From Piromyces finnis finn (taxonomy: Eukaryota > Fungi > Neocallimastigomycota), in NCBI GenBank assembly GCA_002104945.1, contig MCFH01000011.1:868001-932000 (forward strand): a DNA stretch of 64,000 nucleotides. The letters are read 5' to 3'. The translations under genes were made by a program, and so were the position numbers. The notes under the pieces are model-generated. The model searched no databases. It was not told the origin of the DNA and worked only from the letters and a program-made list of their open reading frames with translations. Every line of letters starts with the position of its first letter. Positions within the stretch are counted from its first letter, which is position 1. Positions 34,101-58,483 of this stretch are shown here, piece by piece.

Positions 34101-34771
34101 ATCTAGCTGAATTTGTTTATAATAATACTGTTCATGAATCTACAAAACAAACTCCATTTTTCATTAATTATGGATTCCACCCACCTATGGATGATGTCTT
34201 TTTGTTTCAAGGTTCTGATTCAAACTTTAAATACATTAAAGATGTTAGTAAAAATTTCCTTTTAGTTAAAGATGTTTTGCTTAGATCTCAAGATTTATAC
34301 AAAAGAGCTGCCGATAAGAAAAGAATTATTGCTCCTGAATTGAATGAAGGACAAAAAGTTTGGATTCATGCACCTCCTGCTTTTGCTACTACTGAAAATG
34401 CCAAACTAGCGCCTCGTAAGTATGGTCCTTACAAGGTTTTAGAAGTTTTAAACAATGGTAATTATAAAATAGATATTTCAAAATCACCTTTTCCAAAACA
34501 CCACCCTGTATTTCACATATCGGAACTTGAACCTTATGTATCTACGCCAGATAAATTTAAAAATAGATTTAAATATAAAGAAACTAATGCAGAAATTATA
34601 GAAATTGGTGACTTTAGGACAAATTATAAAGAAAAACGCTACGAATATAAAATTCGTTATAAACACCGCCTAAGTTGGCACTGGGTTCCTGCTACAGTAA
34701 TAGAAAGTAACCCAAGATATCAAGAATTATTAATTCAATTCAATAAAAGTATTAGAAAACACAAAATCTAA
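31064..34771 (+). CDS. Pol, family B (PR, RT, RNase H, IN, degenerate chromodomain), expressed by -1 frameshift
   Basis: ILDSGS, MPFGL, YLDD, CDAS, HHCC/DDE, GPY. The TTG start in the track (31166) is not required because the frame is open from the slip site. Confidence 0.93.
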   Translation, partial: KKLRNELSRESKRVHNTKIIHYNFPTYDSKINKKLPTTFFNLKFFIPIKLNKLYDLKNSINKNQYNLILDSGSYCNFISINLVNKLKLKPHKLLHSIEINGISGSIFIDTYTFLYFKTTIYINHSKFLITFKEKFLIIKNLPTDLLLGNKFLHKYQLHFNYNKNFVYSSLNFNNFKKLNSNKIIYKINKNRLNKSKNLKIKTINHNKLTSNTSFNNLKNYSKPKYQNFSYNYLIHSFLANSEKDYNTDDEDDNEEDFKLEEVPEPYRDLAEVFSKVKADKLPPHRLTDCKIVLQKDASLHYGPIYPLSEDESQVLKEYIDENLKKGFIRPSESPAGYPVLFQKKKDGSLRLCIDYKKLNAVTIRNSYPLPLITDIIERVKGAKFFSKLDLRSAYNLVRIREGDEYKTAFRTKYGHYEYLVMPFGLRNAPATFQSFINSVLRPYLEKFVILYLDDILIYSETLDEHIQHVRTVLQTLLKNNLFAKLKKCEFHKPEVEFLGHVISGNGISTDPKKIKSVQEWPTPNCVKDVQRFVGLCNYYRRFIKDFATIAKPLHNLTKKNTSFNWNDKCNNSFLELKKRLISSPILLHPDPTKPFIVECDASNFAIGCILSQKDEDNKLHPVAYYSRCLNNAELNYSITEKELLAIKCAFSTWRHLLLGAKYQVTVFTDHKNLLYTLGGKVGNQRQHRWHLFFQEYNFQLIYRQGRKNGKPDSLSRRPDYEKNNVEPKPEHILDYKNVPDTPCFVGIVGSLIDQIIENYKDDENANNIYLYFSPNNANQGYFYRPFRKMEKFKIKNNLILYNNLIYVPEKLHVDILTRYHDNATAGHLGIRRTEELINRNFWWPKMHQDIINFVNSCEQCSRNKVNRHKRYDLLRPLEIPDRPWKSIEIDFLCGLPESKRFSVIMVVVDRFSKMIHLIPFKEIPTAEETAKAFLKNIFKLHGLPTDIYTDRGTQFTSALWIEIMEKLRVKPKIATTDHHETVGQVERCNSFIEQYLRCYSRTFFHDDWIEWLHLAEFVYNNTVHESTKQTPFFINYGFHPPMDDVFLFQGSDSNFKYIKDVSKNFLLVKDVLLRSQDLYKRAADKKRIIAPELNEGQKVWIHAPPAFATTENAKLAPRKYGPYKVLEVLNNGNYKIDISKSPFPKHHPVFHISELEPYVSTPDKFKNRFKYKETNAEIIEIGDFRTNYKEKRYEYKIRYKHRLSWHWVPATVIESNPRYQELLIQFNKSIRKHKI

Positions 34772-37475: not shown

Positions 37476-37486
37476 ATTTTCCAACT
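37476..37486 (+). promoter_or_regulatory. Self-priming PBS of family C (ATTTTCCAACT)
   Basis: Exact complement AGTTGGAAAAT at 37197-37207 in the LTR. TATAAAT at 37161. Confidence 0.8.
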
Positions 37487-37534
37487 TATTAGAATAGGAA
37501 GTTCACCTTTGTATACCAATAGTAATAGAAAATA

Positions 37535-37572
<38 letters not shown>

Positions 37573-37626
37573 TATAGTGAGAATTTAATAATAGAATTAA
37601 ATTCGGGGATTATATAAAATATATTA

Positions 37627-37665
<39 letters not shown>

Positions 37666-37984
37666 TTTGTTAGAAATTAATTTTAGTTAATTTCGGGGTA
37701 TTTTATAATTATTTGGTATAGAATAATTTGTTGTTAAAATAGTTTAATAGTTAATAATCAATAAATAGTAATAATAAAAATATATTAGTTTGGTTAATAA
37801 CTAGTTGTTAGTTTAGTAGTAGTAAATAATAAAAAGGTTAGTATAGTATAATAATAAGGTTGTTAAATTATTTATTTAATATAAGAATATAAGAATAAAA
37901 TAATTAGGAATAGTCAAGTTGAATAGTATAAATAATTGGGATATTAAATATTGGTTGACTATTTGTTGTTTATTAAGTAGTAAT

Positions 37985-40900: not shown

Positions 40901-42487
40901 AAACCTGATGCTTTTTCAAGACGTCCTGATTATGAAGAAGATAAAAGTAATAAAGAAGACGAAGAAGCCTATTCTTGCTTGACAGTTAAAGAAATCGAAG
41001 ATACTTTATGTCTTGTGTCTATTCAAGGGAATCTCAAAGAAGATTTAATTAAAGAAATTAAAGAAGATGAAGAAATTAAGGAGTTAATAAATATTCTACA
41101 AGGAAAATCTACCGCAAGTAAGAAGTATAAGAAGTTAATGAAGAATTTTAAGTTAAGCGAAGAGGGAATTCTTTTGTATAAAAGTTTAATTTATGCACCA
41201 AAGAAAATGAGAGATATAATAATCTCAATGCATCATGACAATCCAATTCATGGTCATTTTGGTATTATTAAAACAAAAGAATTAATTACAAGAAACTTTG
41301 TTTGGATAAACATGACTCAAGATATAGTTAAGTTTATTGCTTCTTGTAAAGTTTGTGGAGCTGCTAAGGTTGATCGTCATAGACCTTATGGACTTTTACA
41401 GCCGCTACCAACTCCTGAAAGACCGTGGTCTTCTGTTTCTATGGATTTTATAACTGATTTGCCAAAGTCAAAGGAAAAAACAGTTATAATGGTTGTTGTG
41501 GATAGATTAACGAAGATGGCCCACTTTATTCCGTTTAGAATGATTCCTACTGCTCAAATTGCTGCTGATGTTTTCTTTAGAGAAGTTTTTCGTTTACATG
41601 GTCTACCTGATGAAATAATATCGGATCGAGGAACCCAGTTTACTTCAGAATTTTGGCAAAGATTATGCACTTTGTTGAACATAAAGCACAATATCTCGAG
41701 TGCTCATCATCCTCAAACAGACGGGCAGACTGAACGTGTAAATAGTATTTTAGAACAATTTCTTAGATGTTATATTAACAAAAGAAAAGATAACTGGATG
41801 AACCTTTTGCCTTATGCTGAATTTGCGTATAATAATACACTTCAGCAATCCATAAATCAAACACCATTCTTTGCAAATTATGGGCAAAATCCAAGATTTA
41901 GTACCGAAATTCCTGCTGATAGCGACAATAGAAGAGCTAACAGGCACGCCTCTCAGATGCAAGATAATATTAAATTTTTAAAGAAGAACTTAGAAAAAGC
42001 CAAGAAAAGATATAAGAAGTATGCCGATTGTATTAGACTTATTGGACCTAAGTTAAAGGTTGGTGACTTAGTTTGGTTAAAGCGTCCTGACTTACTTCCT
42101 AAAGGACCTCCAAAATTAACAAATAAGAAACTTGGACCATTTAAGATTATTGAAAAAACAGGACCCGTTTCTTATAAATTGGAACTACCAGAAAGTTTAA
42201 GATGTCATCCCGTTTTCCATATTTCGAACTTAGAACCTTATGTTGAAAGAGAAGTTGAAGTGAATGAATCAACTTCTAGAATTCCAAACATTGCTACCGA
42301 TTCTGCTGAAGGAAGAATTCCATTGAAGATAGTTAGTGAAAAAGTTATTAATGGAACTAAGTACTACTTTATGGTTTGGAAAAACTTATTACCTTCAGAA
42401 AGTACATGGCTTAAAGAAGATGAAATCGATGACCCTCAATTGATCCAGGAATACCTTAAATATAAGTCGCTCAGGGGCTCGACTTAA
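37985..42487 (+). CDS. Gag-Pol polyprotein, family C, 1500 aa from first ATG
   Basis: PKPPRFSG, CFFCKRTGHVKKDC, LVDSGS, MPFGL, YIDD, TDAS, HHCC/DDE, GPF, chromodomain-like YYFMVWKN..ESTW. Confidence 0.96.
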   Translation: MNTRYRMLDNRDDGIAGASDAGSEASSMMDIEDETGKSVNTRGRLIPKPPRFSGKRSELLYFLARLEKYFKYNLEEDATNAYKLDILGCYLEGTAAEWFADLEREESPLLNSYEDFIEAMKARYKTCNSADVANSRLAKLKSSQFKNVMDYCEEFEKMARDSSFNDEAKIHFFMEGLPTSVKEKAKLLYPRIRKLTELINVVAANVELEWKVFGKDPMDVDGKKNRRYNRDLGSRYLSYGVKYRNYVDQESPTTSAKPRKCFFCKRTGHVKKDCPQLKDKVINRPKAFMATTAGRRMLNVYDILLQVNNGVYLKALVDSGSDLDFLDWKAVDKYKIPFQRMFKDKFVEGIGGNGFLKYETIPLIMNIKNHKESIQFYLTDLPSGISVILGKNWLRKHDPTISFKDQTLEFKSEFCSLNCCATPEDMKRRNQEAQLAKEEERRKEKELVQEILNNYKNSLKIRESEIRNKENRKIIDKNKNSCIKKKCSKNLKLNKKNVQKYIVCSVLSNDENSGEDVRENIVEIPDVYKEFENVFDEVECNELPPHRIYDCKIRLKDKDNLFYGPLYPLTEEERNTLKEYISENLEKGFIRPSTSPAGAPVLFVRKKDGTLRLCVDYRRLNENTIRDSYPLPLISELFDRLREAKVFTKLDLKSAYNLVRINEGDEYKTAFRTRFGHFEYLVMPFGLKNAPATFQHFINDVLGEYLDEFAFSYIDDILIYSKNLEEHRKHVKKVLQRLKENGLYAKLSKCEFETSETTFLGHVISDKGISMDPKKVKAIMEWPVPTSVKEVQSFIGLCNYYRRFIPNFASIAKPLHNLTKKDVNFHWPEECNEAFCILKKFFTEEPILIHADPELPFVVETDASNFAIGAVLSQRLPDNNELHPICYYSRGLTKSEKNYPIYDKELLAVIEALKQWRHYLEGAKHQFMIYTDHKNLTFPRKPELLSQRQIRWNLFLTRYDFKIQYRPGKEGGKPDAFSRRPDYEEDKSNKEDEEAYSCLTVKEIEDTLCLVSIQGNLKEDLIKEIKEDEEIKELINILQGKSTASKKYKKLMKNFKLSEEGILLYKSLIYAPKKMRDIIISMHHDNPIHGHFGIIKTKELITRNFVWINMTQDIVKFIASCKVCGAAKVDRHRPYGLLQPLPTPERPWSSVSMDFITDLPKSKEKTVIMVVVDRLTKMAHFIPFRMIPTAQIAADVFFREVFRLHGLPDEIISDRGTQFTSEFWQRLCTLLNIKHNISSAHHPQTDGQTERVNSILEQFLRCYINKRKDNWMNLLPYAEFAYNNTLQQSINQTPFFANYGQNPRFSTEIPADSDNRRANRHASQMQDNIKFLKKNLEKAKKRYKKYADCIRLIGPKLKVGDLVWLKRPDLLPKGPPKLTNKKLGPFKIIEKTGPVSYKLELPESLRCHPVFHISNLEPYVEREVEVNESTSRIPNIATDSAEGRIPLKIVSEKVINGTKYYFMVWKNLLPSESTWLKEDEIDDPQLIQEYLKYKSLRGST

Positions 42488-42498
42488 GAAGAGGGGCA

Positions 42499-43332
42499 TG
42501 TAAAATATTGTATTAATAGAATAATGTATTTAATACGTATTTAAAATAATGTACAATGTATTGAATTAATGTACCGTAAATCTTTACAAAATTTATATCA
42601 CAATACATTAACATAAATCTATGTGAAATCTAAAGTTACGATAAAATAATGTATTACAATACATTAACATAAATTTATGTAAATTTAATTTTATGATAAG
42701 ATAAAGTTTTTGATGATAGAATAAAATTTTAAATTAAATAAATTTTAACCAATAAATATTTTAGATAATAAAAAATTTTTTTATAAACTAAGCCTCAAAA
42801 TTAGAAATAAATAAATTGAATATATGTTTGAAATATAATCAACCATATAGTAAATATATCAAAACTTTATTTTAAGTTTAGAAAATTCTTTAGTAAATAA
42901 ATTGAATTTAAATAGTTTAATACAAATAATTTCTTTTAATAAATGTATAAATATAAACAATGTAAAATTATAATATTAAAACATGTATATTAGAATTTAT
43001 TCAATTTATTTAAAAAGTATAAATAAAGAAAATTTTTCAACTATTGAAACGATAGTTGGAAAATCGTATAGGTTAATTTTGTTTAGATAAATTAACATTA
43101 GTTTATAATTAGTTTATAGTTTAGATTAATAATTTTAGTTTTAAATAAATATAAATTGATTACCTAGTGAGGGCTCTGGTAAAATATCCTTCACGGTAAA
43201 GTAATCAACGGTTGTTTAGTTAGTATAGTTTTAAAAATAAATAAATAAATAAATAAAAATTATTATTAAAAATAATTAGTTTAATTGTTAGTTTAGTGTT
43301 GTATACAAACCTGAACTTTAAAATATTTTACA
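42499..43332 (+). repeat. Family C 3' LTR (834 bp)
   Basis: TGTAAAAT...TTTTACA. 55 bp longer than the reconstructed 5' LTR (779 bp). Confidence 0.93.
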
Positions 43333-43337
43333 TATTG

Positions 43338-44065: not shown

Positions 44066-44594
44066 TGTAAAGATATCAAACGCCTCAACTTGATATCTTT
44101 AATGTAACTTAAGCCATAAGTATTATTGTTTAAGTTACACAAATTATATTCAGAAAAAGAAAATGAGACATAATTTATTTATTAATAATTAAAGTTTAAA
44201 ACAAAATAAATTATTAATTTATTTTTAATGTTTAACAAGTAAATTAAAATTCTCAATTTAAATCCCTAGTTTTAGTATTGTTTTTTTCATAGAAATAGAT
44301 AAATAATATATAAATAATAAATGATTAATATTTCAATAATACATGGGCACATATTCAAATTGAATAGTACTTAATTTGAATTGCCAATTGTATTTTACTA
44401 AAAATAGTTATAGTTTAAATATTTATTAATAATTAAGATTTTAGTGTAGATTTTAAATAATAATATATAAGAAATAAATAGTTATAATATAATATAAATG
44501 TATTTAGGAAAAATATAAATAGAAGATATTTTTCATCATTTTATTGATGTAATTTTATTAATAAAATTTCTATTATAATAAAAGATATTTTATA
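44066..44594 (+). mobile_element. Solo LTR, family W
   Basis: Starts TGTAAAGATATC and ends TTTTATA (CA->TA). Flanked by AAACA at 44061-44065 and 44595-44599. Related copies at ~46967-47223 (-) and ~47680-48009 (+). Confidence 0.65.
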
Positions 44595-45075: not shown

Positions 45076-46236
45076 TGTAATGAAGTATATCTAATGATAA
45101 GGGTTAGACTAGAAAATCATTAAGGTTAGTGTAAAAGTATAAAATTTAAAACAGATTTTATACTTAAAACAAAATAATTTTTATTAACACAAAAATAAAG
45201 AAATAAAACATTAAATTTTTATTTTAAGAAAACATTTTATTTAAACTCTTAAAAATATTATTAACTATATAATAGTTAATAATTAAAAAATTGAAAATAA
45301 CAATTACATCGATTTAACAAATAAAAATTACATGTATTTATATTTTTTCATAATTATATTCTAATATATTATTCTATTTAAATAAACATATATTTAATAT
45401 AAAATAAACAAAACTAATTTAATTAAATAATAAAATAACAGAACTAAACTAAACTAATTCATTATACTTTTAATTCAATTTGAGTAAACTCAAAATTGAA
45501 TAAAGCCCATGTATTTTCTATAAATTAATTTAATATTATCAATACTATTCTTAATATATTTCCTATTGAAATATAAATAAATCTATTTTTAAAACTAAGT
45601 TAAAATTATTAAACTATTCTAAATTTAAATAAAAAAGTATAATCTATTCTAAAATTAAATAAAAAGTATTTAAAAAATATTTTAATTATTTTAAATATTT
45701 GAAATATTTAAATTTAATTAAAATTCTTTTATTCCTTAAATTTAAATATTTATCTTAATTTAAATTTTACGGAATTATTATAAAATAATTTATTATTAAA
45801 TTATTCCATAAAATTTACTCAAAAATTTTATAATCAGTTTTACTAAATATTAATTTATTATTTAATAATTAATAATTAATTATTAAATAATCTAAAGATA
45901 TATATTATATCTTTACAGTTAGATTAATGAAAATTTCATAATTATATTTTTATAACCAATCATTAAGTAATTAATTCACTTATCAAATTGTATTAAAAAA
46001 AAATAATTTTCATGTATAAAAGAGAGAATAAGAAAGATAAAATAGTTTTTTAGTGTTTTTATTAATAATTAATAAAAATTAGTTTTTTTTGTTTCGCCTT
46101 TAGTTTGATAATACACTGACCTAGCGAGTTAGTCGTATTATAATAATAAATTTAATAAATAAACATTATTAAAAAATATATATATATATTTGATACATTG
46201 GAGTGTGTGTGTTTATTATTATAATATTTCGTTACA
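45076..46236 (+). mobile_element. Solo LTR, family Y copy 1 (368 bp net), interrupted by Z
   Basis: TGTAATG...CGTTACA. TSD TTACT at 45071-45075 and 46237-46241. Confidence 0.92.
45130..45917. mobile_element. Solo LTR-like element Z (788 bp) nested in Y copy 1
   Basis: TGTAAA...TTTACA termini. TSD GTTAG at 45125-45129 and 45918-45922. A degenerate relative lies at ~47300-47560. Confidence 0.85.
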
Positions 46237-46486
46237 TTACTTAAATATTAACAGCAATAAGAAGTTACATTCAAGGAAAAAACGAAATAAGCAAAATAAC
46301 ATAATCACAAAATCATCAAATAATTCTTTTAAAAATATGTATTTCGATTGATATTAACAGCACTTCAGGGAACAACATTGACTTATTTTTCCACTAGACA
46401 AGGAATAAAGTTTCGTACTCTCACATTTAAATCAATAGTTTGTCAAGAAATATCGTGGCACGAGGTAAAAATGGCAGGTGGGTTAG

Positions 46487-46852
46487 TGTAACGAAATATT
46501 ATAATAATAAACACACACACTCTAATGTATCAAATATATATGTATTTTTTTAATAATGTTTATTTATTAAATTTATTATTATAATACGACTAACTCGCTA
46601 GGTCAGTGTATTATCAAACTAAAGGCGAAACAAAAAAAACTAATTTTTATTAATTATTAATAAAAACACTAAAAAACTATTTTATCTTTCTTATTCTCTC
46701 TTTTATACATGAAAATTATTTTTTTTAATACAATTTGATAAGTGAATTAATTACTTAATGATTGGTTATAAAAATATAATTATGAAATTTTCATTAATCT
46801 AACCTTAATGATTTTCTAGTCTAACCCTTATCATTAGATATACCTCATTACA
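46487..46852 (-). mobile_element. Solo LTR, family Y copy 2 (366 bp)
   Basis: TSD GTTAG at 46482-46486 and 46853-46857. Nearly identical to copies 1 and 3. Confidence 0.92.
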
Positions 46853-46966: not shown

Positions 46967-48005
46967 TAACTATTTTAGTAAAATGAAATAGGCAGTTCAA
47001 ATTAAGTATTATTCAATTTGAATATGTGCTCATGTATTATTGATATATTAATCATTTAATAATTATATTATCTATCTATTTTTATTAAAAAAATATTAGA
47101 ACTAGTGTTAGAAATAAAGTTCATATTAAAATTAAATATAAGCTAACTCTATGTGGCTTGTAATAATATTTATGGCTTAAGTTACATTAAATATATCAAA
47201 CTGTGACGTTTGATATCTTTACATAGATTAAATATAGTCCATGTATTATCTATATATTAATTAAATATTGATATAATATTTATATATTTACTATTAAAAA
47301 AATGCTAATTTAAAACTACGTTAAAGTTATTAAACTAATTTTAATTAAATAAAAGCTTTTGATTTAATTTGAATATTTAAAATATTTAAATTTAATTATC
47401 CATTAATTTAAATATTTATCCTAGTTTTCATTTTAATTATTATTTAATTATTTCATAAAATTTATTTAATGTTTTTTTATAAATAATTTTCTATTAAAAT
47501 ATCAAAATTATTATTTAATAATTATTAATTATTAAATAATTTAAAGATATATTATATATTTTTTAAATCTAACCAAGGAAAAGAGAATGACAAAAATTTA
47601 AATATTATTGAATTTATCTTCCTTTGTGTGAACTAGCCTACAAGTCTCTATGATAACTATGATTTTAATCCTTGTTGTTGAAATATATCAAACGCCACAT
47701 CCTAATATATTTAATGTAACTTAAGCCACAAATATTATTGCTTAAGTTACATGAATTATATTAAAGAAAAAGAAAATGGGACATAATTTATCTATTGATA
47801 ATTAATGTTTAAAACAAAATAAATTGTTTATTATTAACGTTTAACAAATAAAATTTCTCAATTTAAATACCTAGTTCTAATATTTTTTTAATAAAAATAG
47901 ATAATATAATTATTAAATGATTAATATATCAATAATACATGGGCACATATTCAAATTGAATAATACTTAATTTGAATTGCCTATTTCATTTTACTAAAAT
48001 AGTTA
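46967..48005. repeat. Inverted pair of W-family LTR fragments (arms 46967-47105 and 47871-48005)
   Basis: About 135-bp arms that are reverse complements with few differences. Both are homologous to 44066-44415. Confidence 0.8.
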
Positions 48006-48049
48006 TAGTTGTAAAGAATGTGCCTTTAATAATAATAAAACAAATTATA

Positions 48050-48229
48050 ATATTTACTAAATAACTTAGTAATACTCACACTTTAAAAATATTCTGTAAA
48101 TTAGTAATTTATAAAAATATTATTAAAAACACATAAATTTAACTTAATAAATTAGTGTTTAATATTATTTATTAATAATTTACAGAATATTTTTAAAGTG
48201 TTAATATTACTAAGTTATTTAATAAATAT
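48050..48229. repeat. 180-bp foldback hairpin (53-bp arms, 3 mismatches)
   Basis: 48050-48102 versus the reverse complement of 48177-48229. The interior is also partly palindromic. Confidence 0.85.
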
Positions 48230-49244
48230 AATAAAAAGAACAACGGGATTAAGTTTAACCTGTAGGCAGGCTTTGAGCTATTATACTTTGAATAAGGAAA
48301 TAAGGGAATCCGAGGTACACCACGTACAAGGCACTGTAATAAGTAAGCTAGCATGTGATTTATAGTTATTATCTTTTGCTGTTTGACTATAAACCGAAAA
48401 TAGCCGGAAATGCCTTACTTTAATAAAACAACATTTCTTAATACATTTTAAAATTAATTTTTCTAATAAAACAATTTCTAATTTTGATAATTAATTGTTA
48501 AAACAATTTATTATATAAATTTAAATTTTTGAATTTGCCGGTTTTAGAAGAGTTGATTCTAAGAGCGGGACTTATTCTATTTGACGATAACTAGATAGTA
48601 TACAAATAATTCGCACACTATTTCGGGTATCAACTGTATATTATGGATTCACAATATAGTAGATGATGTAAATTGTCAAAGGTAATAAGTTCTTGTTTCG
48701 GGAAATTTTCACGTTCTTACTTGCTTAATTCTTTTATTTACACTCTTAAATGTGTACCAAGTTTATAAGTCTTAAATTTCTGTTTATTTATTTATTTATT
48801 ATTATTAAAAATTTGCAACTTTTCTAATTCTTTATTCTCAAGCTATTTTGAGAAAACTATTTTGATTAGTGATTAGAAAATTGTGCAAATATTTTTAACT
48901 ATATTTTTATAGATTGTATAAATCTAACGGACTTTAAACCAAAAATAAAAATTTATTGAATATAATGTTTGTTTTTATAAAGTATTTTTTATAAGTTGTA
49001 GTAAACTTAACGGATTTTAAACCAAAAATAGAAATGTGTAAAATAAAACGAATAAATGAAGTAAAAAAACGAAAGTAAAAACGAAAAATTTAAATTTAGA
49101 AAAAACTGGATTTTAAAATAGTACATTTTTCTTTCTTTTATACATGATTATAAATTTAAACTATTAATATGATTACTAACTATTACTAATAAGAATTTTA
49201 AACTTTAATAAAATATATTAGCTTTTAATTAATTTAGTATTTAA

Positions 49245-52200
49245 CTAATCAATTTGGTCTTGTGATTTTCTATGACGTTCTTCGGTTAAATCAATTTCGA
49301 TTTGGAAGTTCGAAGTTTTTCTTTTCTTTATTTCATTACTAATAGCGGAATCGGATGTTGGAAATATTTCCTTAAGTTCATTATCTATTGTAACGAAATA
49401 TTATAATAATAAACACACACACTCCAATGTATCAAATATATATATATATTTTTTAATAATGTTTATTTATTAAATTTATTATTATAATACGACTAACTCG
49501 CTAGGTCAGTGTATTATCAAACTAAAGGCGAAACAAAAAAAACTAATTTTTATTAATTATTAATAAAAACACTAAAAAACTATTTTATCTTTCTTATTCT
49601 CTCTTTTATACATGAAAAATTTTTTTTAATACAATTTGATAAGTGAATTAATTACTTAATGATTGGTTATAAAAATATAATTATGAAATTTTCATTAATC
49701 TAACCTTAATGATTTTCTAGTCTAACCCTTATCATTAGATATACTTCATTACATCTATAATTAAGGCAGTTATTCTTTTATCAATATTTTCAATCTTGCG
49801 GTTGGTTTCTTCTATGAGTTTCCATAAGTCATTTAACTGTTTTTCCGATTTATTAACTTTTTTTGTTAATTCTATTCGCTCAGCCTTGGGATTTAAGTCG
49901 TATCTAAGGTCGTTGATTTTTTGGTTGAGTTTCTCGAACTTTCTCTTAGTTTCTGATTGTGTATTGCCATTTTGCATTGAATACATTTCTTCTTTGATCT
50001 TCTTTATTTCTATATTAAACTGTTCTTTTCTATTGAGAACTTCCTTGAGGTCTTCACATCTTAAGTTAATTTGTTTCTTGTATTGCTTTTCAAAATATGA
50101 GTTCTCTTCTAATAAGTCTATTATTTGTTCTTTGAGACTTTTAAATAATGCGTCTTGATTCTTGTACCATTTTGAAAGGTATTCTTTTAACTCTGTTTGT
50201 TTATTATTTTCAAGTAACGAATTTATTGTAGCTTTAAAAACTTTGAAGTCGGTACTTTCATTTTCTGTATTTTCTTTAGTTGAATTTTCTTTATCCTTTA
50301 TTTCGATTGCATTTAAGATAAAATCTAAGGAGTTGACTTCTTCGATATTGTTTACTTGTTGATGATTCCGATTAGAAACATTGCTTAGGTTGTTATTAGT
50401 GTTATTATCTTGTTCCATATTTATAAATCTTGAAAGAAGGTCGGCTATTTGATTGTCTTTACCTTCAATATAACAAGGGATTACGTTAAAATTACAAATA
50501 TTTTCAAATAAACGTAACTTCCTATTGGTTTCGACTTTCGATCCGGAATTAATATAGATCACGAGATTCTTATGATCGGTAGCACAGTATATTTTTTGAC
50601 CTTGTTGAAGTAAGAGTCTGTAATGGAGTAGTGTTTCTGATAATGCTAATAGTTCCCTGTCGAATGTAGAGTATTTTTTCTCTGTTGAATTAAGTTTTCT
50701 AGAGTAGAATCCTATGGGTTTTAAATATTTTTTAAGTTTGGTTAGGTTATTATTTTCGATTTCAAAGGTGTTCATAGCCTCATTTAATTTAATTGGAGGG
50801 TTAATGTCTTCACGATTCTTGGCTTTATCGGAGTTATTATTTTTGCGTCCATTATGTCCGTTATACGTCCATTTCTTATTATCAAATAGATTTTCGATTG
50901 TTTCTCGATTGATATTACTCTTGTATACGTTATTTGAAACGTAGTTTTGAACATGTACATGGGGGGCCTCCGCTTGGAAAATAGCGGTTCCAATTCCGAT
51001 TTCCGAGGCGTCGGTTAGGATAAGGATGTCGTGGTTAGGTTTGAAAGGTGCTAAATCCGGAAGGTTAGGTAAAAGATTTTTAAAGTAAATGAGTTCATCA
51101 TCCATTTCTTTAGTCCAGGTAGTAGTTTTGTTAGATAATCCGAGAGAAATGTTTCTGGTTTTTTCAGTAAAGTTTTTTACATAATCTTTGAAATAGTTAA
51201 GAAAACCGTATAATTGTTGATATTCCTTCTGAGCGTAGCATTTCTTGATGTCTAATTGTTTATTAGAAATAGGGTGGATTTTTTCGAAACCTATTTTGTA
51301 TCCAAGATATTCGAATTCTTCTGGGAAGAAAAGACATTTTTCCAATTTGCAATAAAAGTGGTTTTCTTTAAATTTATTAAGAGTAAAAGCACAAAGTTCT
51401 AAACATTCTTCCTTGCTTTGGGCGTAGATATGAATATCATCCAGGTAGATATCGATTCCTTTATTAAGATATTCTTTAAGTAGTAGATTGAGAATAGATT
51501 GAAAAATTGAAGGGGCTGTAGATAAACCAAAGGGTAGGACTTTCCACTGGTAGGTTTGGTTCTTGAAGCGAAAGCTTGTTAAGAAACGGTATTTGGGTTC
51601 CAAAAATATTTGATTGTAGGCGTTTCTTAGATCCAAAAGAATATGATATTTGTATTGTGCAGCTCTGTGCACTAATTCAATGATTTTAGGTATTGGATAG
51701 TTGTTATGGTGGAGACAGTTATTGACCATAACATAATTGAAAACTGTTCTGAAGGATCCATCCTTCTTTGGTACATTAAAGACGTTGCAAGCCGAGCTGG
51801 CTCTTGTCCTTTCTATCTTTCCATTTTCTTCGAGTTCCTTAAATTCTTCTTCTAAGGCGTCTTCCTGTCCTTTATCAAGTTTTATGTGAGGCATCATTGG
51901 GAGCCTCTTTACCTTTTCCTTATCATAGGGGAGGTAGGCATTTAGATTGTTGTTTCTTCTATCAAAGATCTTACCTTTAGGCGGAGATTCAAAGACTTCT
52001 TTATAGGTTTGTAACTCTTTTGGTAGGTTACTTATTTCTTTAATTATGAATTCCTCGAGACCCTTCTTATGGTCGGTGGAAATTATGAAACTTTGATTGT
52101 CCTGTTTCTGTTTTAGAAGTTTTTGTTCGATTTTAAATTTTTCATTTGCAGATAAGGTAATTGATTCTGTGTTGTGAACCTGATTGTTATTTTTCTTTGA

Positions 52201-55200
52201 TTTAGTTGATTTCTTGATGACAATATTTCCGTTACTATCTAAATTTTCTTTGTCCCATGATTCATCTACTACATATTTCCTTTTTTGGAGTAATTCTCTG
52301 AATTCTTCTTTTCTGTTACTTTCTTGATTAAGAAAATATGGGAAATAGCTGGCATTTAAGTGAAGTTTCCTCATTTTAAATAAGAGATCATCATTTAATA
52401 TTATCTTATCGTAATAAAAATTTTTCTTTTGATGATTTGGAGGGCCATTTATTGGCATAATACTTAGCTTGATGTTGGTAAAGTAAAATATACCTTTCTT
52501 AATTTCGATTCCGATAGTTAAGTAACAATATTCTTTAATCTCAGTTATCGTTTCTCCTGATTGGATTGTATGTGTTAAATTATTGGGGTATTTCTTGATA
52601 TTAAGGTTAGAGAGTATGTTCTCTCCAATGCAATTTCCGGCTGATCCAGAGTCTAATAATACTATCCCGTATCGAGCGTTATGTTTATTATCGATGATTA
52701 ATGCCTTATTATAGTGCATCTTACCACCGAAACGAGGGTTATTGATGTATTTTGAATTCTTGATGGTTTCCATAGTATTATGGATATATTCTTTAGTAAG
52801 CATTTTCTTTTGTTTGTAATCCAGACTGTTGTCTAAAACACTTTCCTCTGTGTTATGAGATAATTTTTGCCTCCCGATGTTGTTTCCTGCTTTATTAGAT
52901 TTTTTATTCTTGTCTGAATAATTTTTGACAACTGTTTTCTTCTTTTCAGTATATTTAAAGTTATTCTTATTTTGATTAGGTGTATTCTTTGGATTACTGA
53001 TGAAAGATTTTAAATCTTCTTTCATGCTTTTATTACCTTCCTGTTCCGCGATTGTTTTGAATATTGTAGTAATGAATTCTTTGTATATAATCTTGTTCTC
53101 TTCATCTTGTTCCTCATAGTCTTCCCTTGGATCTCTTAATGGTAATTTGGGGAGCTTTTTGAGGTATTGTTCGGCGAAGGTGTTCGGTAAAGATTTCGAG
53201 AGTTTAGTAAATCTGCTGAAATAGAATTTATTAATATTGTTTCCTATTTTTTCGATATTTTCAAGAAGATTTTCTAAGTTTTCAATATTGAGGTTATTAA
53301 TTCTTAACGATTTCCATTTGGCTTCTTGTTCACTAAGAGATAATTCGCAAAATTCATTCTCGAATTGATAGATAAAGTTGTTTAATTTTTGCCAAGTTGT
53401 AGACTCATTCCATGCGAGTTCCTTGTTGTCTAATTTTGTTTTATACGTTTTTTCGTACCATTGGCGTACTTCCTTGCCCCCTCTGGAAATGATAGCATCT
53501 CTAATTTGGATTTCAGTTACTTTGGGGCAGTAGGCTTGTAAATAAGTTTTGAGACTAAGTAAGAATTCATAGCCATTATTTTTATCCGTGTACCTTGGTG
53601 CTCGTATGTTAAATAAAGTCCTGAACCCTGATATATTCGTCTGAACCTCAAGGGGTAAGTCTTGAAATTCCACTGGGCGAAAGGGTACGACTGGTGAGAC
53701 CTTGGTGTTAAAGATTCTTGGGTGCGTTTTATAATGGTAGTATTGCTCACTTTTTGAGCCTGTACTAAAGTCGGGTTTAGTTTCTTGGAGGAGTTGTTGA
53801 AACTTGTGGCGATTTTCGGTTTCAGGCATGTTGAAGACTTTGGTGCGGTGGAATTTGATATCGAAGTAATTCTGTTTGGCGTCTTCGCTTTTGAAATGAC
53901 TGTTGAATTTATTTGTGAGTGATGATGGATCTTCTTGGTTCTGAAAGGAGGAAGAGGCTTGAAAGTTATGGTTAGTACATTCTAAATGGTTAATTCTGTT
54001 GTTGAAGTTATTTTCCTGTTCTTCGAACCTTTTATCTATTTTCTTGTTTTGTTCTTCCTCTCTTTCGTCAAGAGTAGAATGTCCTACGAAAGATTTACTT
54101 CTAAATTTGGATATGTTACTAAGGGAAATATCTTCAGTGGGATTACTGAAACAAGTATCCATTAAGTAACGTTCATTAATTAGGGTATTAATAATCTTCT
54201 TGCATTTATCATTTTTTGGAGTTATGGTTACTTCGAGGGTGTCAGGGTTGATGTCTGCCTTAAAGAGTCTCTTGGTTTTAGAGTTTGAATGGAATAAGGA
54301 TTTGTATTCCTCTTGGACATTGTCTATTTCGAGATGTTTAACATCATTTAATCTCTTCTTGATAGTAGTAATTTCCTGTAGACAATCTTTAATCTGTTCC
54401 TCCTTAACTGAAGCTTGTAGTTGTTCATATTTATCAAGTACTTCTTCATATAATTTTCTAAGTGTAGTGATTTTTTCTATAATATCAGGATTATTTTCAT
54501 CATTGAGGTGTTCCATTTCTAAGGATTTAAGACGTTCCTGAAGTTGTGTTTGAATTATAGCGTGATTTTCTAATGTTTCTTTGAAATCACTAATGTTTTT
54601 AATAAATTGATCTTCTACTTTTCCACTCATGTGGTAGTTCATAACTAATTGACTTTGAAGATTTTGTATAGCCTGTTTGGAGTCGATTCTAGTGGCCTGT
54701 AGTTTTTCGGCCATTTCGTTCTTTATAACGGTCGATATATTATTGATATACGCTTGGCTGTCCACTGTTTGTTGAGTGACCTTTTTGATTTCATTTTCTA
54801 AGGTAGTGATCTTTTTTGTTAATTGGGAAATATTTTGATTAGTATTTTCAATTGATGACTGTTGTTTAGTCAGTCCGTCTTCTAGTGGGACAAGATCACT
54901 TGTTTTGGCTGTTTTTAACTGGCTTATTTGGAGTTCTTCCTTAACCTCGTTCACTGCTAAATTGAGATCCGTAGGTTTTACGGTATTAATATCGATAACG
55001 TTCGCTAAGTTTTGCACTTGATAGCTATCTGCTTTATTTGCGATGTCTGTTTCTAAATGTTGTAGTTTTTTGTTCTGTTCAGATATTGAGGTTTGTAAGG
55101 TAGCATTTAAAGTAGCAGTGAGGTTCATAAACTGAGCTTGTATCTGTTCCATGAAGTTACTCATCATGGTTTGCATTTTGGACTCAAGCTCTTGCTTGTT

Positions 55201-55521
55201 ACTGTTGGACTCAGTTTTGAGTTCCTTATAGATATTATCCATTGAAGATAGGAGAGTAGCACCATTGTTACTTGGATCATAATTAAATATTTGGGCATTA
55301 CCTCCATAAGAATTCTTGATTTCGGATTCTAAGGTTTTGTTGTTCTCTATTTCGTCTGGGAGGTGGTTGATATAGTCGTCGACACCAGACATATCGGATT
55401 TTGATTCTTTTTCAGCTTTCTCGATTTCCATCGATTGGACTTTTTCTGAAGACTTTTCTGAATGTCCTTTTGTTACTTCTTCTTCTGAGATGGGTTGTTT
55501 TCCTTTCTTGGTGTTATCCAT
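49245..55521 (-). CDS. Integrase-less retroelement polyprotein (coiled coil-Gag/CA-like-PR-RT-RNase H-coiled coil); now ends at 49735 (1928 aa) because of a solo-LTR insertion, originally ~1968 aa
   Basis: LLDSGSAG (~52650), LPFGLSTAPSIFQ, YLDD (~51440), TDAS..ELLAL..TDH..ADLLSR. No HHCC or DDE after RNase H. Removing 49389-49753 restores the frame to TAG at 49245-49247. Confidence 0.9.
49389..49753 (-). mobile_element. Solo LTR, family Y copy 3 (365 bp) inserted in the 3' end of the polyprotein ORF
   Basis: TSD TCTAT at 49384-49388 and 49754-49758. It supplies the terminal codons VMKYI*. Confidence 0.93.
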
Positions 55522-56358
55522 TACGAGATATTGAATTTGAAGTGTTATTGAATATAATTGTTTTAAATATAAATAGTAAGGTCTTACTTCTTGCCTTTGA
55601 TTTTTACTTGGTTGGGACTTATTCGTTGCCCTTTGTTGGTTTATTGGGTACTCGGTAAATTTAAAATAATCTAGAAAAAGGGAAAGTTTTTTCTAAATTT
55701 ACCGTTATAAAATAATATTCTTTATAACTCCTATAGTGTGAAGTTTAATTCTTATACATAATACTTCTATGTTCGGATAAAGTTGATATAGGGAAAGAAA
55801 ACTTGTAATAATTTTTATTGCTAACAATAAGTTAGACGCTAAAAAAATTTTTACACCGTTCCTTTCTTTTATTAATTTAATTAATATTTATAATAATTTT
55901 ATTTTATTTATTGATTTTATAAATTTTTGAAATAGTTGTTCCGATGAATTTATTTTAAATCTTATTGAGATTAGCCGAGATCAATCAAATATCGTAAATT
56001 AAAATTTAATTATTAATTAATACTATTATCTTTCCGAAACCTAAATTTTAATTAATTTTGGAAAAGAATAAAAGGAAAGAAAATTTACAAAAAATTATTT
56101 TTTGTGCTTTTATTAACTAATAAAGTAATTTAAATAAAATTATAAAATATTAATTAATAAATTAAAATAAAGAATTTAAAAAAAATAAAAAATATTTTTT
56201 AATATATTAAAAGACAGATTACTTATAGGTGGATATACTCGCCTATTGTGTAAAGAAACGTTTCTATAAGAAATATATATTATTTTTATAGACATTACAA
56301 CCAATAAAAATCTTAGAATTAAATATAATAACAATAATAACTATAATAATAATAGTTA

Positions 56359-58483
56359 ATGATTTTAACAAAAACAATAAATATTTTTAATATTGAACAT
56401 GTTCCCGAATTCCAAAATCGCCATGATTTTGATGATGATGTCGATTTTGAAGACATCAGACCTTTTATGAATAATATAAACAATTTAGACACTATTAATA
56501 ACTACGACATTAATAACAAACAAGACAATGACAAGAACAACTTCTCGAAATGGGTTTACGACTCAGGAGCAGTTGTACATGTCACTAACAACAAAAACTT
56601 ATTATTCAATTTTGTTAAGAATAAGATCATATTATATTGCGCAAATGGGTCCAAATGCTCTTTTGAAGGTTATGAACCTTTACTGGTTATGTTAACAAGT
56701 TTCGTTTAATTCTCAATAAAGTTTTTTATTTTAGCCAGGTTAACAAAAACTTAATTAGTGGTGTAAAATTAGCATACTCTGGTATTGTATGCACCACTAG
56801 AATGGATATTAATAATAATCCTAATCTAACCCTTTATTATGACAATAATATCATCGGTACATATACATTAATTATGGATCATAACACATTCCCAATTGAT
56901 ATATTTAATTCCATAATTAATAAAATACCTTCTAACATTGACAACATTAACAATACTGACTATAACTTATGGTATAGAAGGTTAGTTCATTTTTACAATA
57001 ATAATTTTGACAAACAATTAAAAGTCAATCAATTCAATAATCATAGACGTCCTTTTTGTGATATCTCCAAATTAAAACGACTCTCTCATAATAGAGAAAC
57101 TTCAAAGGCTGAAAAAAATTATGGAAACTCTCCATTCCGATATTATCGGTCCTTTACTAGTCTCTTTCATAGGTAAAAGATTCATTATTACTTTCATTGA
57201 TGAATTTTCAAGGAAAAGCTGGATTTTTACACTTTCTGCTAAGGCCGAAGCTGTTAAAACTATTCTGGAATTTTTCACATTTTTGGAAAATCAATGAGAA
57301 TTTCAATATTAAATTTTTAAATCAGATTACGGGAAGGAATATAACAACAATAAAATTGTTAGCTAATATAAAAGCAAAGGTATCGCTAAAACACTTTCCC
57401 CTCCATATAATCCTCAAAATAACGGCATAGCTGAAAGGTTTAATCAAACACTCATAGATTCTGCAAAAACCATTCTAACTTGGAATAACATTAGTATAAT
57501 GTTTTTGGATTTTGTGGTTAGATTTTCTAAATATGTATATAATCTAATCTCTCATAGTAGTATTGGCTACAAAATTCCTGACGAAGTATTTTTCAATTCA
57601 CCCGTCAAAATTGACCATATTAGAGTTTTTGGGTGTATTGCTTTTTACAAAAATTTTTCTCAGTCAAAATCAAAATTTGATCCCAATTCCATCAAAGGTT
57701 TCGACAAGTCCAATTATTACATTATTATGGATTTCCACGACTACTCATTACACCAGGTTCAGGAGGCAGTATTCTTCGAGGACAAACCAGGAAATCTGGC
57801 CACCAACAATAGGGGAATGAATAGTGGTACAATCAGCAATAACAATCACAAATTTAACCAGTAAACTGGTAGTCATGAGTTCGACTCCGGTATTAATGGG
57901 AAGAAGTCCTATCTATTGGAAATCCAAGAAACAAAGTATTGCCACCAGTACAGCTGAAGCTGAATATATAGCTACATCGGAATGTTTAAAACAAATATTA
58001 TGGATCAAAAATATCATTAATGAACTATTTGGAATTAATAAGACCGTAACAATATATACGGATAATCTACCAAGCTTGAGAAGTATAGAAAATGAGAACT
58101 AAACACGAAATTAAAACATATAAGCATAAAATATCACTTCAACAAACATTATATAAATAATAAAGAAATTCAATTAAAATATATAGACACAAATAACATG
58201 CTAGTAGACACACTGACAAAATTTGTTAATGGAAATAAAATGACCAACTTCCCAAACCAAATTTTTAATTTTAAAAAGTAGGTTTGAGGGGGAATATTAA
58301 AATAATTTAGAATAATTTAATATAAAATAGTATAAATATAAGATAAGCCACATACTTGATATAAAGTATGTAACACCACAAATTAAGTTATAAAAATAAA
58401 AATGTAAAATTTATTAAGCCTTGTAATTACCTTTATTAAATTTTATTTAATAAATAAAGTTATATTAAAACCTAAACTCAACA
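56359..58483 (+). mobile_element. Degenerate Ty1/copia relic (PR, GAG-pre-IN, IN, RNase H; RT deleted), with probable 3' LTR 58295-58483
   Basis: KWVYDSGAVVHVTNNKNLL; LWYRRLVH; FIDEFSRKSW, NGIAERFNQTL (frameshifted); SPIYWKSKKQS..STAEAEYIA..YTDN. PPT GAGGGGGAA followed by TATTAA..TCAACA. Confidence 0.85.

Follow-up and report, generated by a model that had tools for sequence, protein, structure and literature searches.

The 64-kb stretch of Piromyces finnis DNA analysed here (hereafter the window) carries a retroelement copy with protease, reverse transcriptase (RT) and RNase H, and its lack of integrase is a property of the whole family to which it belongs, not of the window copy alone. On balance we favour the reading that this copy is a member of a low-copy Ty3/gypsy-like (Metaviridae-like), LTR-type family of gut fungi that has no integrase, primes its own reverse transcription and inserts by an integrase-independent route. 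The original prediction had proposed a new retroelement class. The element is an unusual offshoot of a known, Ty3/gypsy-like class, because its RT is far closer to Ty3 than to other types and because a terminal repeat adjoining a polypurine run and complementarity of the self-priming type are both present. The features of the copy, all on the minus strand except the nested solo LTR, for which no strand is given, are as follows.

48712..55760 (each end +/- about 50 nt), minus: whole element copy including one nested foreign solo LTR, based on DNA homology to P. finnis copies, which starts just upstream of the 5' arm and reaches the 3' arm
55685..55701, minus: 5' arm of 17 nt, lying in the leader 164-180 nt before the ATG; putative self-priming-type primer-binding site, exact reverse complement of 49091-49107
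49245..55521, minus: polyprotein gene, first base to stop; mechanical ORF 49735-55521 (1928 aa) plus a 46-codon piece beyond the insert
53842..55521, minus: N-terminal region, aa 1-560; acidic, N/Q-rich, long coiled-coil-like helices (AF2), without known domain (no Pfam match)
52822..53754, minus: helical region in Gag position, aa 590-900, about 11 predicted helices; capsid homology unproven
52312..52734, minus: retropepsin-like protease, aa about 930-1070 (D-S-G at aa 957-959); LLDSGS and IILNDDLL conserved in the family, beta strands in the model
51202..52008, minus: RT, aa 1172-1440 (YLDD), motifs conserved; Pfam RVT_1 and Ty3 RT 4ol8 matches
50422..51201, minus: connection and RNase H, aa 1441-1700; D-E-D-D intact, low-complexity insert of about 80 aa
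49245..50421, minus: C-terminal helical tail where integrase normally sits, aa 1701 to end; all-helical prediction, with the nested solo LTR inside it
49389..49753: nested solo LTR belonging to another family (TGTAA..TTACA), flanked by 5-bp target duplications (49384-49388, 49754-49758)
49316..49329, minus: polypurine run, 14 purines long, within the gene's final codons; putative primer site for the plus strand (PPT), shared by the window, L001, L013, L014 and L016
48712..49313, minus: terminal repeat of the family, 3' copy (equivalent to an LTR; end approximate), from homology with the repeat flanking L016 on both sides
49136..49142, minus: TATA-like box (TATAAAA) upstream of the 3' arm; conserved in 4/4 aligned 3' regions and 7/7 3' ends compared
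49091..49107, minus: 3' arm, 17 nt, about 140 nt past the true stop, with the conserved TATAAA box about 30-50 nt upstream of it; putative transcript 5' end

We infer both bounds of the element, and neither is sharp: the 3' bound is set about 25 nt past AGTGTAAAT, a conserved motif lying ahead of the end in relatives, and the 5' bound follows L001 and L016, in which family homology continues for about 55 nt beyond the 5' arm on its upstream side.

A single polyprotein interrupted by a solo LTR

Each element of the family has one polyprotein, about 1970 aa long, in which a long helical N-terminal region is followed by the helical Gag-position region, retropepsin, RT, RNase H and a helical tail of about 270 aa. 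An open frame of 1928 codons does exist on the minus strand (49735..55521), but the gene is broken once by the insertion of a solo LTR, its true span being 49245-55521. The stop described as natural is supplied by this LTR (365 bp, TG..CA, with a perfect 5-bp target duplication), to which the last 19 nt of the frame belong. Beyond the LTR the frame is open for 46 further codons, still without integrase; these are conserved in relatives lacking the insert, with 67-83% identity where the same piece is contiguous with the tail. The nested LTR is absent from relatives at the same position, and would have come from an ordinary, integrase-using element that hit the window copy later.

The enzymatic core agrees with what had been read from the sequence at the outset. 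Pfam RVT_1 matches aa 1250-1410 (E 2.8e-29), and the Pfam RT_RNaseH and RT_RNaseH_2 models match with E 5e-17 and 1e-18, respectively, the match being split by the low-complexity insert (about 80 aa). Relatives conserve, as does the window copy, YLDD, the D-E-D-D residues of RNase H and the protease D-S-G with its downstream IILNDDLL; the protease gave no Pfam match at E<=1 and is identified by motif only.

The structure models (AF2) of polyprotein regions are of low confidence (pLDDT 41-44). In the N-terminal region, helices are modelled at aa 87-411 (pLDDT 55-70 in parts), so the coiled-coil-like character predicted for it is borne out as long helices in the N-terminal 90-410 aa, at low to moderate model confidence. 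Its homologues number only three in 5.8 billion clusters, all of them from Piromyces finnis. The tail is predicted to be all-helical, with helices of up to 76 residues (pLDDT 50-77), and holds a single Cys and a single His; neither a CCHC nor an HHCC zinc motif was found, in keeping with the reported lack of a zinc knuckle.

The segment previously called capsid-like did not fare as well. About 11 helices are predicted at aa 650-841 (pLDDT below 50), and this helical content is its sole support: no Gag or capsid domain was matched by Pfam in 8 family members scanned, a PDB profile search with the region returned nothing, and hhalign against Ty3/gypsy Gag alignments gave a probability of 0.5%. 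One sub-threshold Caulimovir_coat_dom match (17 bits vs a cut-off of 27) was lost in a scan of the longer aa 1-1170 piece, and none appeared in 7 other family members.

Integrase is absent from the whole family

Relatives with 70-81% aa identity are found at nine or more Piromyces finnis loci and in metagenome contigs; the family is also present in a second assembly (GCA_002157105.1), and a search recovered family fragments at 45-70% identity. Near-full or partial P. finnis copies lie at loci L001, L005, L013, L014, L015 (two copies) and L016. The copies are non-syntenic and nested among other transposons, and many are truncated, frameshifted or rearranged; they fall into multiple diverged lineages, each with few disabling lesions. 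The search for genomic copies returned a multi-copy family of low copy number, without integrase.

All relatives that reach the end of RNase H (the window, L001, L013, L014, the two copies in L015, and L016) continue into the same helical tail and then stop, and integrase is absent from every relative reaching that point, in P. finnis loci and metagenome contigs alike. The initial claim, that some 270 aa of tail occupy the position of integrase, holds across the family, and, as also claimed, no tyrosine recombinase ORF was found in any copy or flank. The tails are 60-77% identical in the P. finnis proteins P0185-P0187. Synonymous sites being saturated, selection is given as pN/pS and not as a proper dN/dS: pN was 0.07-0.23 and pS 0.61-0.99 in all six polyprotein regions, with pN/pS of about 0.17-0.26 in the N-terminal region and about 0.2 in the tail. 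These comparisons, made on sequence, show purifying selection on every region of the polyprotein, the N-terminal region and tail behaving like the enzymes, so that neither a deletion peculiar to one copy nor host domestication accounts for the family. The idea that the window copy might derive by deletion from integrase-bearing relatives finds no such relative above 36% RT identity among 1.84 billion representatives, and a tail conserved family-wide. An integrase-bearing master element could exist in genomes other than those sampled.

The statement that no integrase ORF lies nearby has to be corrected. A degraded Ty1/copia PR-IN fragment occupies 56359-58263 on the other strand, 0.8-2.7 kb upstream, and three further Ty3/gypsy elements (four large integrase-domain reading frames) lie at 16.4-43.3 kb. 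Neither the Ty1/copia fragment nor these Ty3/gypsy integrases are part of the integrase-less element.

Terminal repeat, primer arms and mode of insertion

No LTR pair flanks the window copy, as originally noted, but one 3' repeat of roughly 0.6 kb was identified by homology to L016. No matching sequence occurs from the 5' arm upstream to the window end, and the missing 5' repeat is a feature of the window copy; in one-repeat copies, about 55 nt of family sequence lie upstream of the 5' arm. L016, the one relative in which the repeat is seen on both sides, is an internally deleted copy. Its terminal direct repeat, which matches over 343 bp (98.8%) and a further 83 bp (100%), begins 2 nt past the polypurine run, with ATCGAAC and not TG, so that the 5' end is not of the TG..CA type. 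The 3' repeat copy of L016 is truncated, which makes the repeat end approximate and leaves the adjacency of repeat and primer site unproven.

The reported absence of a tRNA-type primer site was upheld, no TGG-type site being seen in the leader on reading by eye; no tRNA genes were found in the 64-kb window. By analogy with self-priming Ty3/gypsy elements, the two arms are putative primer-like complementarity in place of such a site. Their core motif occurs 3 times in 64 kb vs 0.32 expected, and in four lineages the complementarity is exact, extending over 17, 24, 20 and 20 nt. Next to the core, the bases vary from lineage to lineage and match within each, amounting to co-variation in all four. 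Where L013 naturally stands head to tail, a domain of 580 nt (z -5.2) is closed by the arms. Distance to the TATA box is the sole basis on which the RNA 5' end is placed at the 3' arm.

Tf1 and Tj1 are self-priming elements (PMC4600332), and Tf1 deprived of integrase inserts by annealing at primer-site homologies, leaving truncated elements as well as tandems with one LTR in common (PMC11042837). Like Tf1, Tf2 and Tj1 of fission yeasts, the family is fungal, of Ty3/gypsy type and built on a single ORF, with a primer site, putative in the family, complementary to a repeat segment downstream of the promoter, and its copies show the same architectures as integrase-independent Tf1 insertions. Unlike the family, which is entirely without integrase, Tf1 encodes and normally uses a chromodomain integrase; for the family, self-priming and the RNA ends are deduced. 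The complementary segment of Tf1 is 11 nt, whereas the arms of the family are 17-24 nt and separated by about 0.3-0.6 kb.

On the reading that we favour, the element's own PR-RT-RNase H would reverse-transcribe packaged RNA. The minus strand would be self-primed as in Tf1/Tf2/Tj1, the 17-24-nt segment at the RNA 5' end, placed there by its position just downstream of the repeat's TATA box, pairing exactly with the leader site, and the plus strand would start at the conserved polypurine run adjoining the repeat. Because the element is without integrase, the cDNA would enter the genome through host recombination or annealing, the integrase-independent route shown experimentally for Tf1. Tandem head-to-tail, truncated and one-terminal-repeat copies with junction microhomology would be the outcome, and the window copy may be such a one-repeat copy.

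The copies themselves are of these kinds. Those of L013 are head-to-tail, L014 and one L015 copy are 5'-truncated, and the window copy and L001 have the 3' repeat only. L016, the only insertion with both junctions readable, sits in a repeat; its target duplication is 14-25 bp long, and each junction shows microhomology. Head-to-tail copies, truncations and this duplication with microhomology suggest integrase-independent insertion.

Affinity and alternative origins

RT-RNase H of the family scores 185 bits with the Ty3 RT (4ol8, E 1.6e-53), 89 with a caulimovirus-type 'Enzymatic polyprotein' (8r0s) and 66 with foamy-virus pol. With Ty3/gypsy elements (Metaviridae, e.g. yeast Ty3) the family further shares the PR-RT-RNase H order, YLDD and ADLLSR-type motifs, and a polypurine run adjoining a TATA-containing terminal repeat. 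Unlike them, it has no integrase, chromodomain, zinc knuckle, tRNA-type primer site or detected Gag/capsid homology; it carries the 560-aa helical N-terminal extension and the 270-aa helical tail, its copies are one-repeat or head-to-tail, and the duplication is 14-25 bp, not 5 bp, in the one readable case. Its RT is about 31-36% identical to that of any integrase-bearing element, the closest of which, ordinary Ty3/gypsy RTs, reach 36% or less; none closer was found among 1.84 billion representatives.

That the copies are endogenised remnants of an episomal, pararetrovirus-like virus of anaerobic fungi is a minority view, which we hold unlikely. Its DNA would be circular or terminally redundant with one repeat-equivalent per unit, and the copies in chromosomes would have arisen by accident through host repair. 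The lack of integrase in every copy, the unit-length copies with a single repeat (window, L001) and the head-to-tail junctions in L013 fit such a virus, as do the high diversity, low copy number, few lesions and purifying selection typical of repeated endogenisation; the TATA box, being upstream, would place the two arms within a single long hairpin of the leader. Caulimoviridae likewise have PR-RT-RNase H without integrase, integrated copies that are often rearranged or tandem and, possibly, a long structured leader. However, the RT resembles that of Ty3 far more than caulimovirus-type pol (185 vs 89 bits), the host is a fungus, and the movement protein, zinc-knuckle coat and tRNA-Met primer site are all absent. 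The single coat-domain match lies below threshold and was not reproduced. In L016 the direct repeat stands on both sides, right after the polypurine run, as a linear two-LTR cDNA would give, and tandem and one-LTR copies are also expected from integrase-independent insertion of an LTR retrotransposon.

We also regard as improbable a non-autonomous Ty3/gypsy branch that lost its integrase and is inserted in trans by the integrase of co-resident elements. The family has LTR-like repeats and a PPT, and potential donors are at hand in the three Ty3/gypsy elements of the window (four integrase-domain frames), with LTR pairs 99.3-99.98% identical. Against this stand the 36% ceiling on RT identity to integrase-bearing relatives, the non-TG repeat start and the 14-25-bp duplication of L016; conservation of the tail under selection across deeply diverged lineages would be unexpected for a recent deletion derivative.

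A DIRS/Ngaro-like relative, whose tyrosine-recombinase gene was lost or never shown in these copies, is very unlikely. Such elements and the family alike have no DDE integrase, carry an RT-RNase H remotely related to that of Ty3/gypsy, and bear inverted complementary segments close to both ends. In a crude NJ tree the family forms a long branch of no clear affiliation, beside the RT-RNase H-tyrosine-recombinase protein P0014; P0014 scores 56 bits vs 150-185 for Ty3-type RTs, and the grouping is most likely long-branch attraction. DIRS elements are without protease, which the family has; it lacks a tyrosine recombinase, in copies and flanks, and a methyltransferase, its arms are only 17-24 nt, and L016 combines a PPT-adjacent direct terminal repeat with a target duplication. 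Finally, the domesticated host gene derived from a retroelement that had been entertained earlier, in spite of a long intact frame and purifying selection that extends to non-enzymatic regions, was rejected, given nine or more non-syntenic loci in one genome, many truncated, frameshifted or rearranged, with other transposons as flanks, conserved retroelement cis signals and a window copy broken by a solo LTR.

Two further copies of the nested solo LTR are present in the window (98% identity), each with its own 5-bp duplication. The 5-bp duplications of the window's solo LTRs contrast with the 14-25 bp at L016.

Reading frame, enzymes and a nested solo LTR

The window is extremely AT-rich (GC 15-37%) and holds a nest of retroelements beside host genes, among them a CotH-domain gene and an SH3-domain gene. 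Its content is like that of a Piromyces-like anaerobic fungus, an origin with which the CotH gene agrees. The element under study (48712..55760, minus strand; hereafter the window copy) carries, as originally predicted, one uninterrupted long frame of 1928 codons (49735..55521, minus strand). Pfam places RVT_1 at aa 1250-1410 (E 2.8e-29) and also recognises RT_RNaseH and RT_RNaseH_2, the RNase H match falling in two pieces with a low-complexity insert between them. The closest solved structure for the RT-RNase H region in the PDB comparison was the yeast Ty3 RT (4ol8; 185 bits, E 1.6e-53), followed by an 'Enzymatic polyprotein' chain (8r0s, 89 bits), foamy-virus PR-RT (66 bits) and HIV RT (~30 bits). 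'Enzymatic polyprotein' is the customary name for caulimovirus pol. Against the chromovirus of the same window, identity was 31% across 354 aa. The YLDD motif of the RT and the four RNase H carboxylates, thought to be intact, are indeed kept in the relatives, as are the D-S-G of the proposed protease and a downstream IILNDDLL; the protease itself is without a Pfam match.

The stop that closes this frame had been taken for a natural one. It belongs instead to a nested unit of 365 bp (starting TGTAA and ending TTACA) that contains the last 19 nt of the frame and has two further copies in the window.

Three solo LTRs belonging to one family (~365 bp, TGTAA..TTACA; 98% identical); a perfect 5-bp target duplication of its own flanks every copy
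45076-46239: copy holding a further nested insert of ~780 bp
46487-46852: second copy
49389-49753: copy nested in the gene of the element

The duplications and its recurrence identify the 365-bp unit as a solo LTR from a different, integrase-using family, of which no internal part was found within the window. Past it the gene piece, translated separately, is open for 46 more codons, which are 67-83% identical to the ends of the relatives and form there an uninterrupted continuation of the C-terminal tail. Since these codons are open and conserved, the gene was broken once, by insertion, and spans 49245-55521; at its true end, 49245, it is still without an integrase.

Pfam gave no integrase match on the element. 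In agreement with the claim that none follows RNase H, the tail that occupies this position is predicted as wholly helical and holds a single Cys and a single His, likewise in all relatives; every copy reaching the end of RNase H runs on into the same tail, and none has an integrase or recombinase. Neither a Phage_integrase-type match in the frame (Pfam) nor any further ORF inside the element (window copy and L001, an almost full-length relative) pointed to a tyrosine recombinase, and the predicted lack of a Zn knuckle held, CCHC and HHCC patterns both being absent. AlphaFold2 models, built on 8-sequence alignments, had a mean pLDDT of 41 and 43.5 and were used for secondary structure alone. 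At this low confidence they predict very long helices at aa 87-411, about eleven shorter helices at aa 650-841 (the Gag position) and strands across the protease region. The tail (aa 1723-1927) is predicted to consist exclusively of long helices (pLDDT 50-77) and does not resemble the alpha/beta integrase core, so the objection that it might fold as a divergent integrase fails, as far as model evidence goes. The supposed capsid-like segment found no support in Pfam (8 members), in the PDB profile search or in hhalign against Ty3/gypsy Gag; a single sub-threshold match to a Caulimovirus coat domain (17 bits against a cut-off of 27) was not recovered on rescan. The N-terminal 560 aa have just three homologues among 5.8 billion clusters and the tail has six, all from P. 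finnis. The N-terminal and C-terminal regions, both predicted to be helical, are two domains kept under selection.

A family of diverged copies

The family (the element and its relatives) was found by exhaustive search alone, covering 1.84 billion representatives. This search returned family fragments at 45-70% identity and beyond those nothing above ~36%, the long high-scoring matches being gene models that fuse several ordinary integrase-bearing Ty3/gypsy copies. With the whole frame as query, a length-restricted word-based protein search gave RT-level matches alone (<=30% identity) and a metagenome scan gave no relative. Genomic copies, whose lookup had been recommended, were present at nine or more P. 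finnis loci (GCA_002104945.1), near-full or partial, and family fragments also occur in GCA_002157105.1 and in metagenome contigs. P. finnis database entries for pieces of the family are labelled hypothetical proteins only.

Copies at the fetched contig loci
L001: almost full length; one in-frame stop, one frameshift
L005: 3'-truncated and frameshifted three times or more
L013: two partial pieces
L014: 5'-truncated; two frameshifts
L015: two copies, one 5'-truncated, the other extending past the locus boundary and carrying one frameshift or more
L016: large internal deletion; foreign insertion in the upstream repeat, downstream repeat truncated

Identity of these copies, to the window copy as well as to one another, is 70-81%. 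Codons were compared piecewise, every piece inside one frame and in-frame stop codons skipped. Across six regions, non-synonymous differences per site (pN) were 0.07-0.23 (N-terminal region 0.14-0.21, tail 0.15-0.20) and synonymous ones (pS) 0.61-0.99; because synonymous sites are saturated, selection is given as pN/pS (~0.08-0.37) and not as dN/dS. Judging from these comparisons, lineages so diverged that show so few disabling lesions must have evolved as functional coding sequence almost up to the time of each insertion. With synteny also lacking, this excludes a single decayed deletion derivative, the fate envisaged had integrase-bearing relatives existed; no close relative with an integrase was found, and the tail is common to all copies that reach it. 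A database protein with a long N-terminus and an integrase finger (P0012) was considered as an integrase-bearing cousin and rejected: it aligns over RT-RH alone, at 23%.

Remoter members, at 17444-18747 of L001 and on the metagenome contigs L002 and L006, show 26-47% identity in the Gag-position and protease regions and 61% in the RT; they suggest that the family is wider than the P. finnis copies. In L002 an RNase H end lies shortly upstream of an N-terminal region, possibly a further head-to-tail arrangement. Of the RT phylogeny that had been proposed, a crude NJ tree of the RT core was made and used solely to show that there is no close affiliation; it is star-like, the long branch of the family drawing in other long branches, and gives no clear placement. 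Among these long-branch neighbours, and touching the element in no other way, is a set of ~1088-aa proteins from large ENA contigs (P0014-P0029). The one scanned (P0014) has RT, RNase H and weak, sub-threshold tyrosine-recombinase (phage-integrase) matches in one chain, an architecture that would be DIRS/Ngaro-like.

Terminal repeat, putative self-priming and proposed route of insertion

In every comparison of the window copy with the P. finnis copies, DNA homology ends at the identical point, ~150 nt past the true stop. The bounds of the window copy are approximate, to about +/-50 nt.

Cis elements of the window copy
55685-55701, minus strand: 5' arm (leader segment)
49316-49329: polypurine run of 14 purines
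48712-49313: terminal repeat (3' copy), end approximate
49091-49107, minus strand: 3' arm (3' segment, in the terminal repeat)

The 3' arm (17 nt) is the exact reverse complement of the leader segment, and exact arm complementarity extends over 24, 20 and 20 nt in three other lineages. The arms of all four share the core TAGAAAAAACT; the bases flanking it vary among lineages, yet agree within each. In L013 both arms lie on one natural stretch and close a 580-nt domain (z -5.2). A TATAAA box precedes the 3' segment by ~30-50 nt in seven of seven 3' ends, and in each of the five copies compared there, the polypurine run falls inside the final codons of the gene. By-eye reading of the leader revealed no tRNA-type (TGG-type) primer site, and an Rfam scan of 47900-56400 gave no match.

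Within L016, which is internally deleted, a direct repeat starts 2 nt past the polypurine run and is found again ahead of the leader; its two copies match over 343 bp (98.8%) and 83 bp (100%), and the foreign insertion interrupts the upstream one. On the strength of this repeat, a terminal repeat of roughly 0.55-0.6 kb, holding the ORF end, the TATA box and the 3' segment, was ascribed to the family. A two-sided repeat was seen in this one relative. The arms form a putative primer pair of the self-priming kind, in which case the RNA would start where the 3' arm lies within the repeat and finish downstream of the AGTGTAAAT motif. Ty3/gypsy elements that self-prime from a site complementary to their own repeat are known (Tf1, Tj1; PMC4600332), and the layout found here, with a polypurine run beside the repeat, a promoter in the repeat and a complementary leader site replacing the tRNA site, is like theirs (PMC4600332).

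As predicted, the window copy has no LTR pair; like L001, it has the 3' repeat alone. No second repeat was found within 8-9 kb upstream of either copy, exact and relaxed self-comparison for LTRs around the window copy gave AT-rich noise alone, and in neither copy did short terminal direct repeats or target duplications rise above shuffles. Upstream of the leader segment, both retain at most ~55-60 nt of family sequence. In L013 the order is head-to-tail: gene 3' part, repeat, leader, gene 5' part. Both junctions were readable in L016 alone, which sits in a common repeat; 14-25 bp of that repeat are duplicated at the junctions, with 5-7 nt of microhomology at each of the two. An integrase-type duplication of 4-6 bp was not found there, in contrast to the 5-bp duplications of the integrase-made solo LTRs of the window. 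Two observations at L001 were withdrawn: a 5-bp AAGAT duplication, since L016 shows both AAGAT and the ~55 nt ahead of the 5' arm to belong to the element, and a split host protease, the downstream "protease half" of which was unsupported.

We consider it moderately probable that this integrase-less family, which had been proposed as a new class, is an offshoot of the Ty3/gypsy-type LTR retroelements that makes its own cDNA and is inserted by host recombination; what survives of the proposal is the PR-RT-RH set with a conserved non-integrase tail, family-wide. Its own PR-RT-RH would make the cDNA, probably self-primed, and without an integrase insertion would depend on host recombination. With Metaviridae the element shares the type of RT and RNase H and the PR-RT-RH order; it differs in having no DDE integrase (HHCC finger and rve core) downstream of RNase H. 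Long direct repeats stand on both sides of L016 and on the 3' side alone of the window copy and L001, and the Gag position shows helices in a low-confidence model and no CCHC. The self-complementarity of 17-24 nt, co-varying in four lineages, would be of the Tf1/sushi type; the integrase with its C-terminal chromodomain is lacking. Laboratory work on Tf1, Ty1 and retroviruses has demonstrated insertion without integrase (PMC11042837). It is commonly viewed there as a side route. Tf1 deprived of its integrase inserts through annealing at primer-site homologies, giving truncated elements and tandem elements with one common LTR, and the architectures seen among the copies of the family match these (PMC11042837).

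A pararetrovirus-like episomal replicon would likewise yield one-repeat and head-to-tail copies. We regard it as unlikely: the affinity of the RT (89 bits to the caulimovirus-like chain against 185 to Ty3) and the two-repeat copy in L016 weigh against it, and the movement protein, zinc-knuckle coat and tRNA-Met primer site of Caulimoviridae were not found in the element (Pfam, CCHC scan and by-eye leader reading). A related and equally unlikely view is that the copies are what a reverse-transcribing, virus-like agent of anaerobic fungi left behind in the chromosomes: pararetrovirus-like yet descended from Metaviridae, this replicon would multiply from an episomal or tandem template with no integrase, and its helical N- and C-terminal domains would act in the particle or in transmission. 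We know of no pararetrovirus-like agent outside plants and animals, and such a replicon, if true, would be the first. It is also doubtful that a foreign integrase mobilised the copies in trans, as the repeat does not start with TG, the duplication in L016 is long and no close integrase-bearing relative was found. DIRS-like ancestry is very improbable: a tyrosine recombinase ORF is lacking, the complementary arms are merely 17-24 nt long, and the direct repeat and target duplication of L016 are contrary to DIRS. Finally, the domesticated gene that had been offered is hardly credible and, given diverged lineages with few lesions and no synteny, therefore effectively excluded; the copies are truncated and rearranged, and no single syntenic orthologous locus without mobile termini was found.

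In practice the integrase serves to define LTR retroelements. To judge by the saturation of synonymous sites between branches, the integrase-less family described here seems to be a natural lineage that has done without one long enough for deeply diverged branches to form, with protease, RT, RNase H and the two helical domains all under selection over that time. If this holds, it would offer a natural system for studying how retroelements persist solely by host recombination, a form possibly intermediate between LTR retrotransposons and pararetroviruses, and two new protein domains with a role perhaps replacing integrase or nucleocapsid function. Annotation pipelines based on LTRs or integrase will miss such elements.

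Neighbours in the window

Other features of the window
510-1084, 3081-3258, 11199-11340: related satellite-like short-period arrays, 80-97% identical across the three places
3758-5428: CotH kinase-domain ORF, with chitobiase/Fn3-associated domains ahead of CotH
16412-29007: chromovirus tandem array built of 6.2-kb units, 99.98% identical, that share LTRs (LTR-internal-LTR-internal-LTR)
17078-21442, 23169-27533, minus strand: two identical intact 1454-aa ORFs of this array (Gag-PR-RT-RH-IN-chromodomain)
29053-36732, 36728-43336: two young Ty3/gypsy elements, large frames with integrase domains in both
44069-44419, 47681-48015: ~350-bp repeat, direct copies 85% identical and 3.6 kb apart; partial inverted copy at 46967-47105
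48045-48234: inverted repeat between the 3' end of the element and the ~350-bp repeat; 75-nt arms, 88% complementary, 40-nt spacer
56359-58263, plus strand: degraded Ty1/copia fragment; separate short ORFs hold a protease beta-barrel, a pre-integrase domain and an integrase SH3-like domain

The Ty1/copia fragment lies antisense to and upstream of the element, and L001 has a counterpart in the equivalent position. We considered this integrase fragment as part of the element and rejected it: the two fragments are 30-39% identical, against 75% for the element, and the arrangement was therefore taken as coincidence. One of the two young Ty3/gypsy elements has 1040-bp LTRs (99.7% identical) and separate gag and pol ORFs, and in the other the LTRs measure ~0.7-0.8 kb (99.3% identical) and a chromodomain sits in a 1522-aa ORF. 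The ~350-bp repeat, of which 82-85% identical copies occur at several P. finnis loci (L013, L014), may stem from an old non-autonomous element whose two LTRs it would form, with two of the solo LTRs lying in between. CotH genes with chitobiase/Fn3-associated domains are typical of anaerobic gut fungi.
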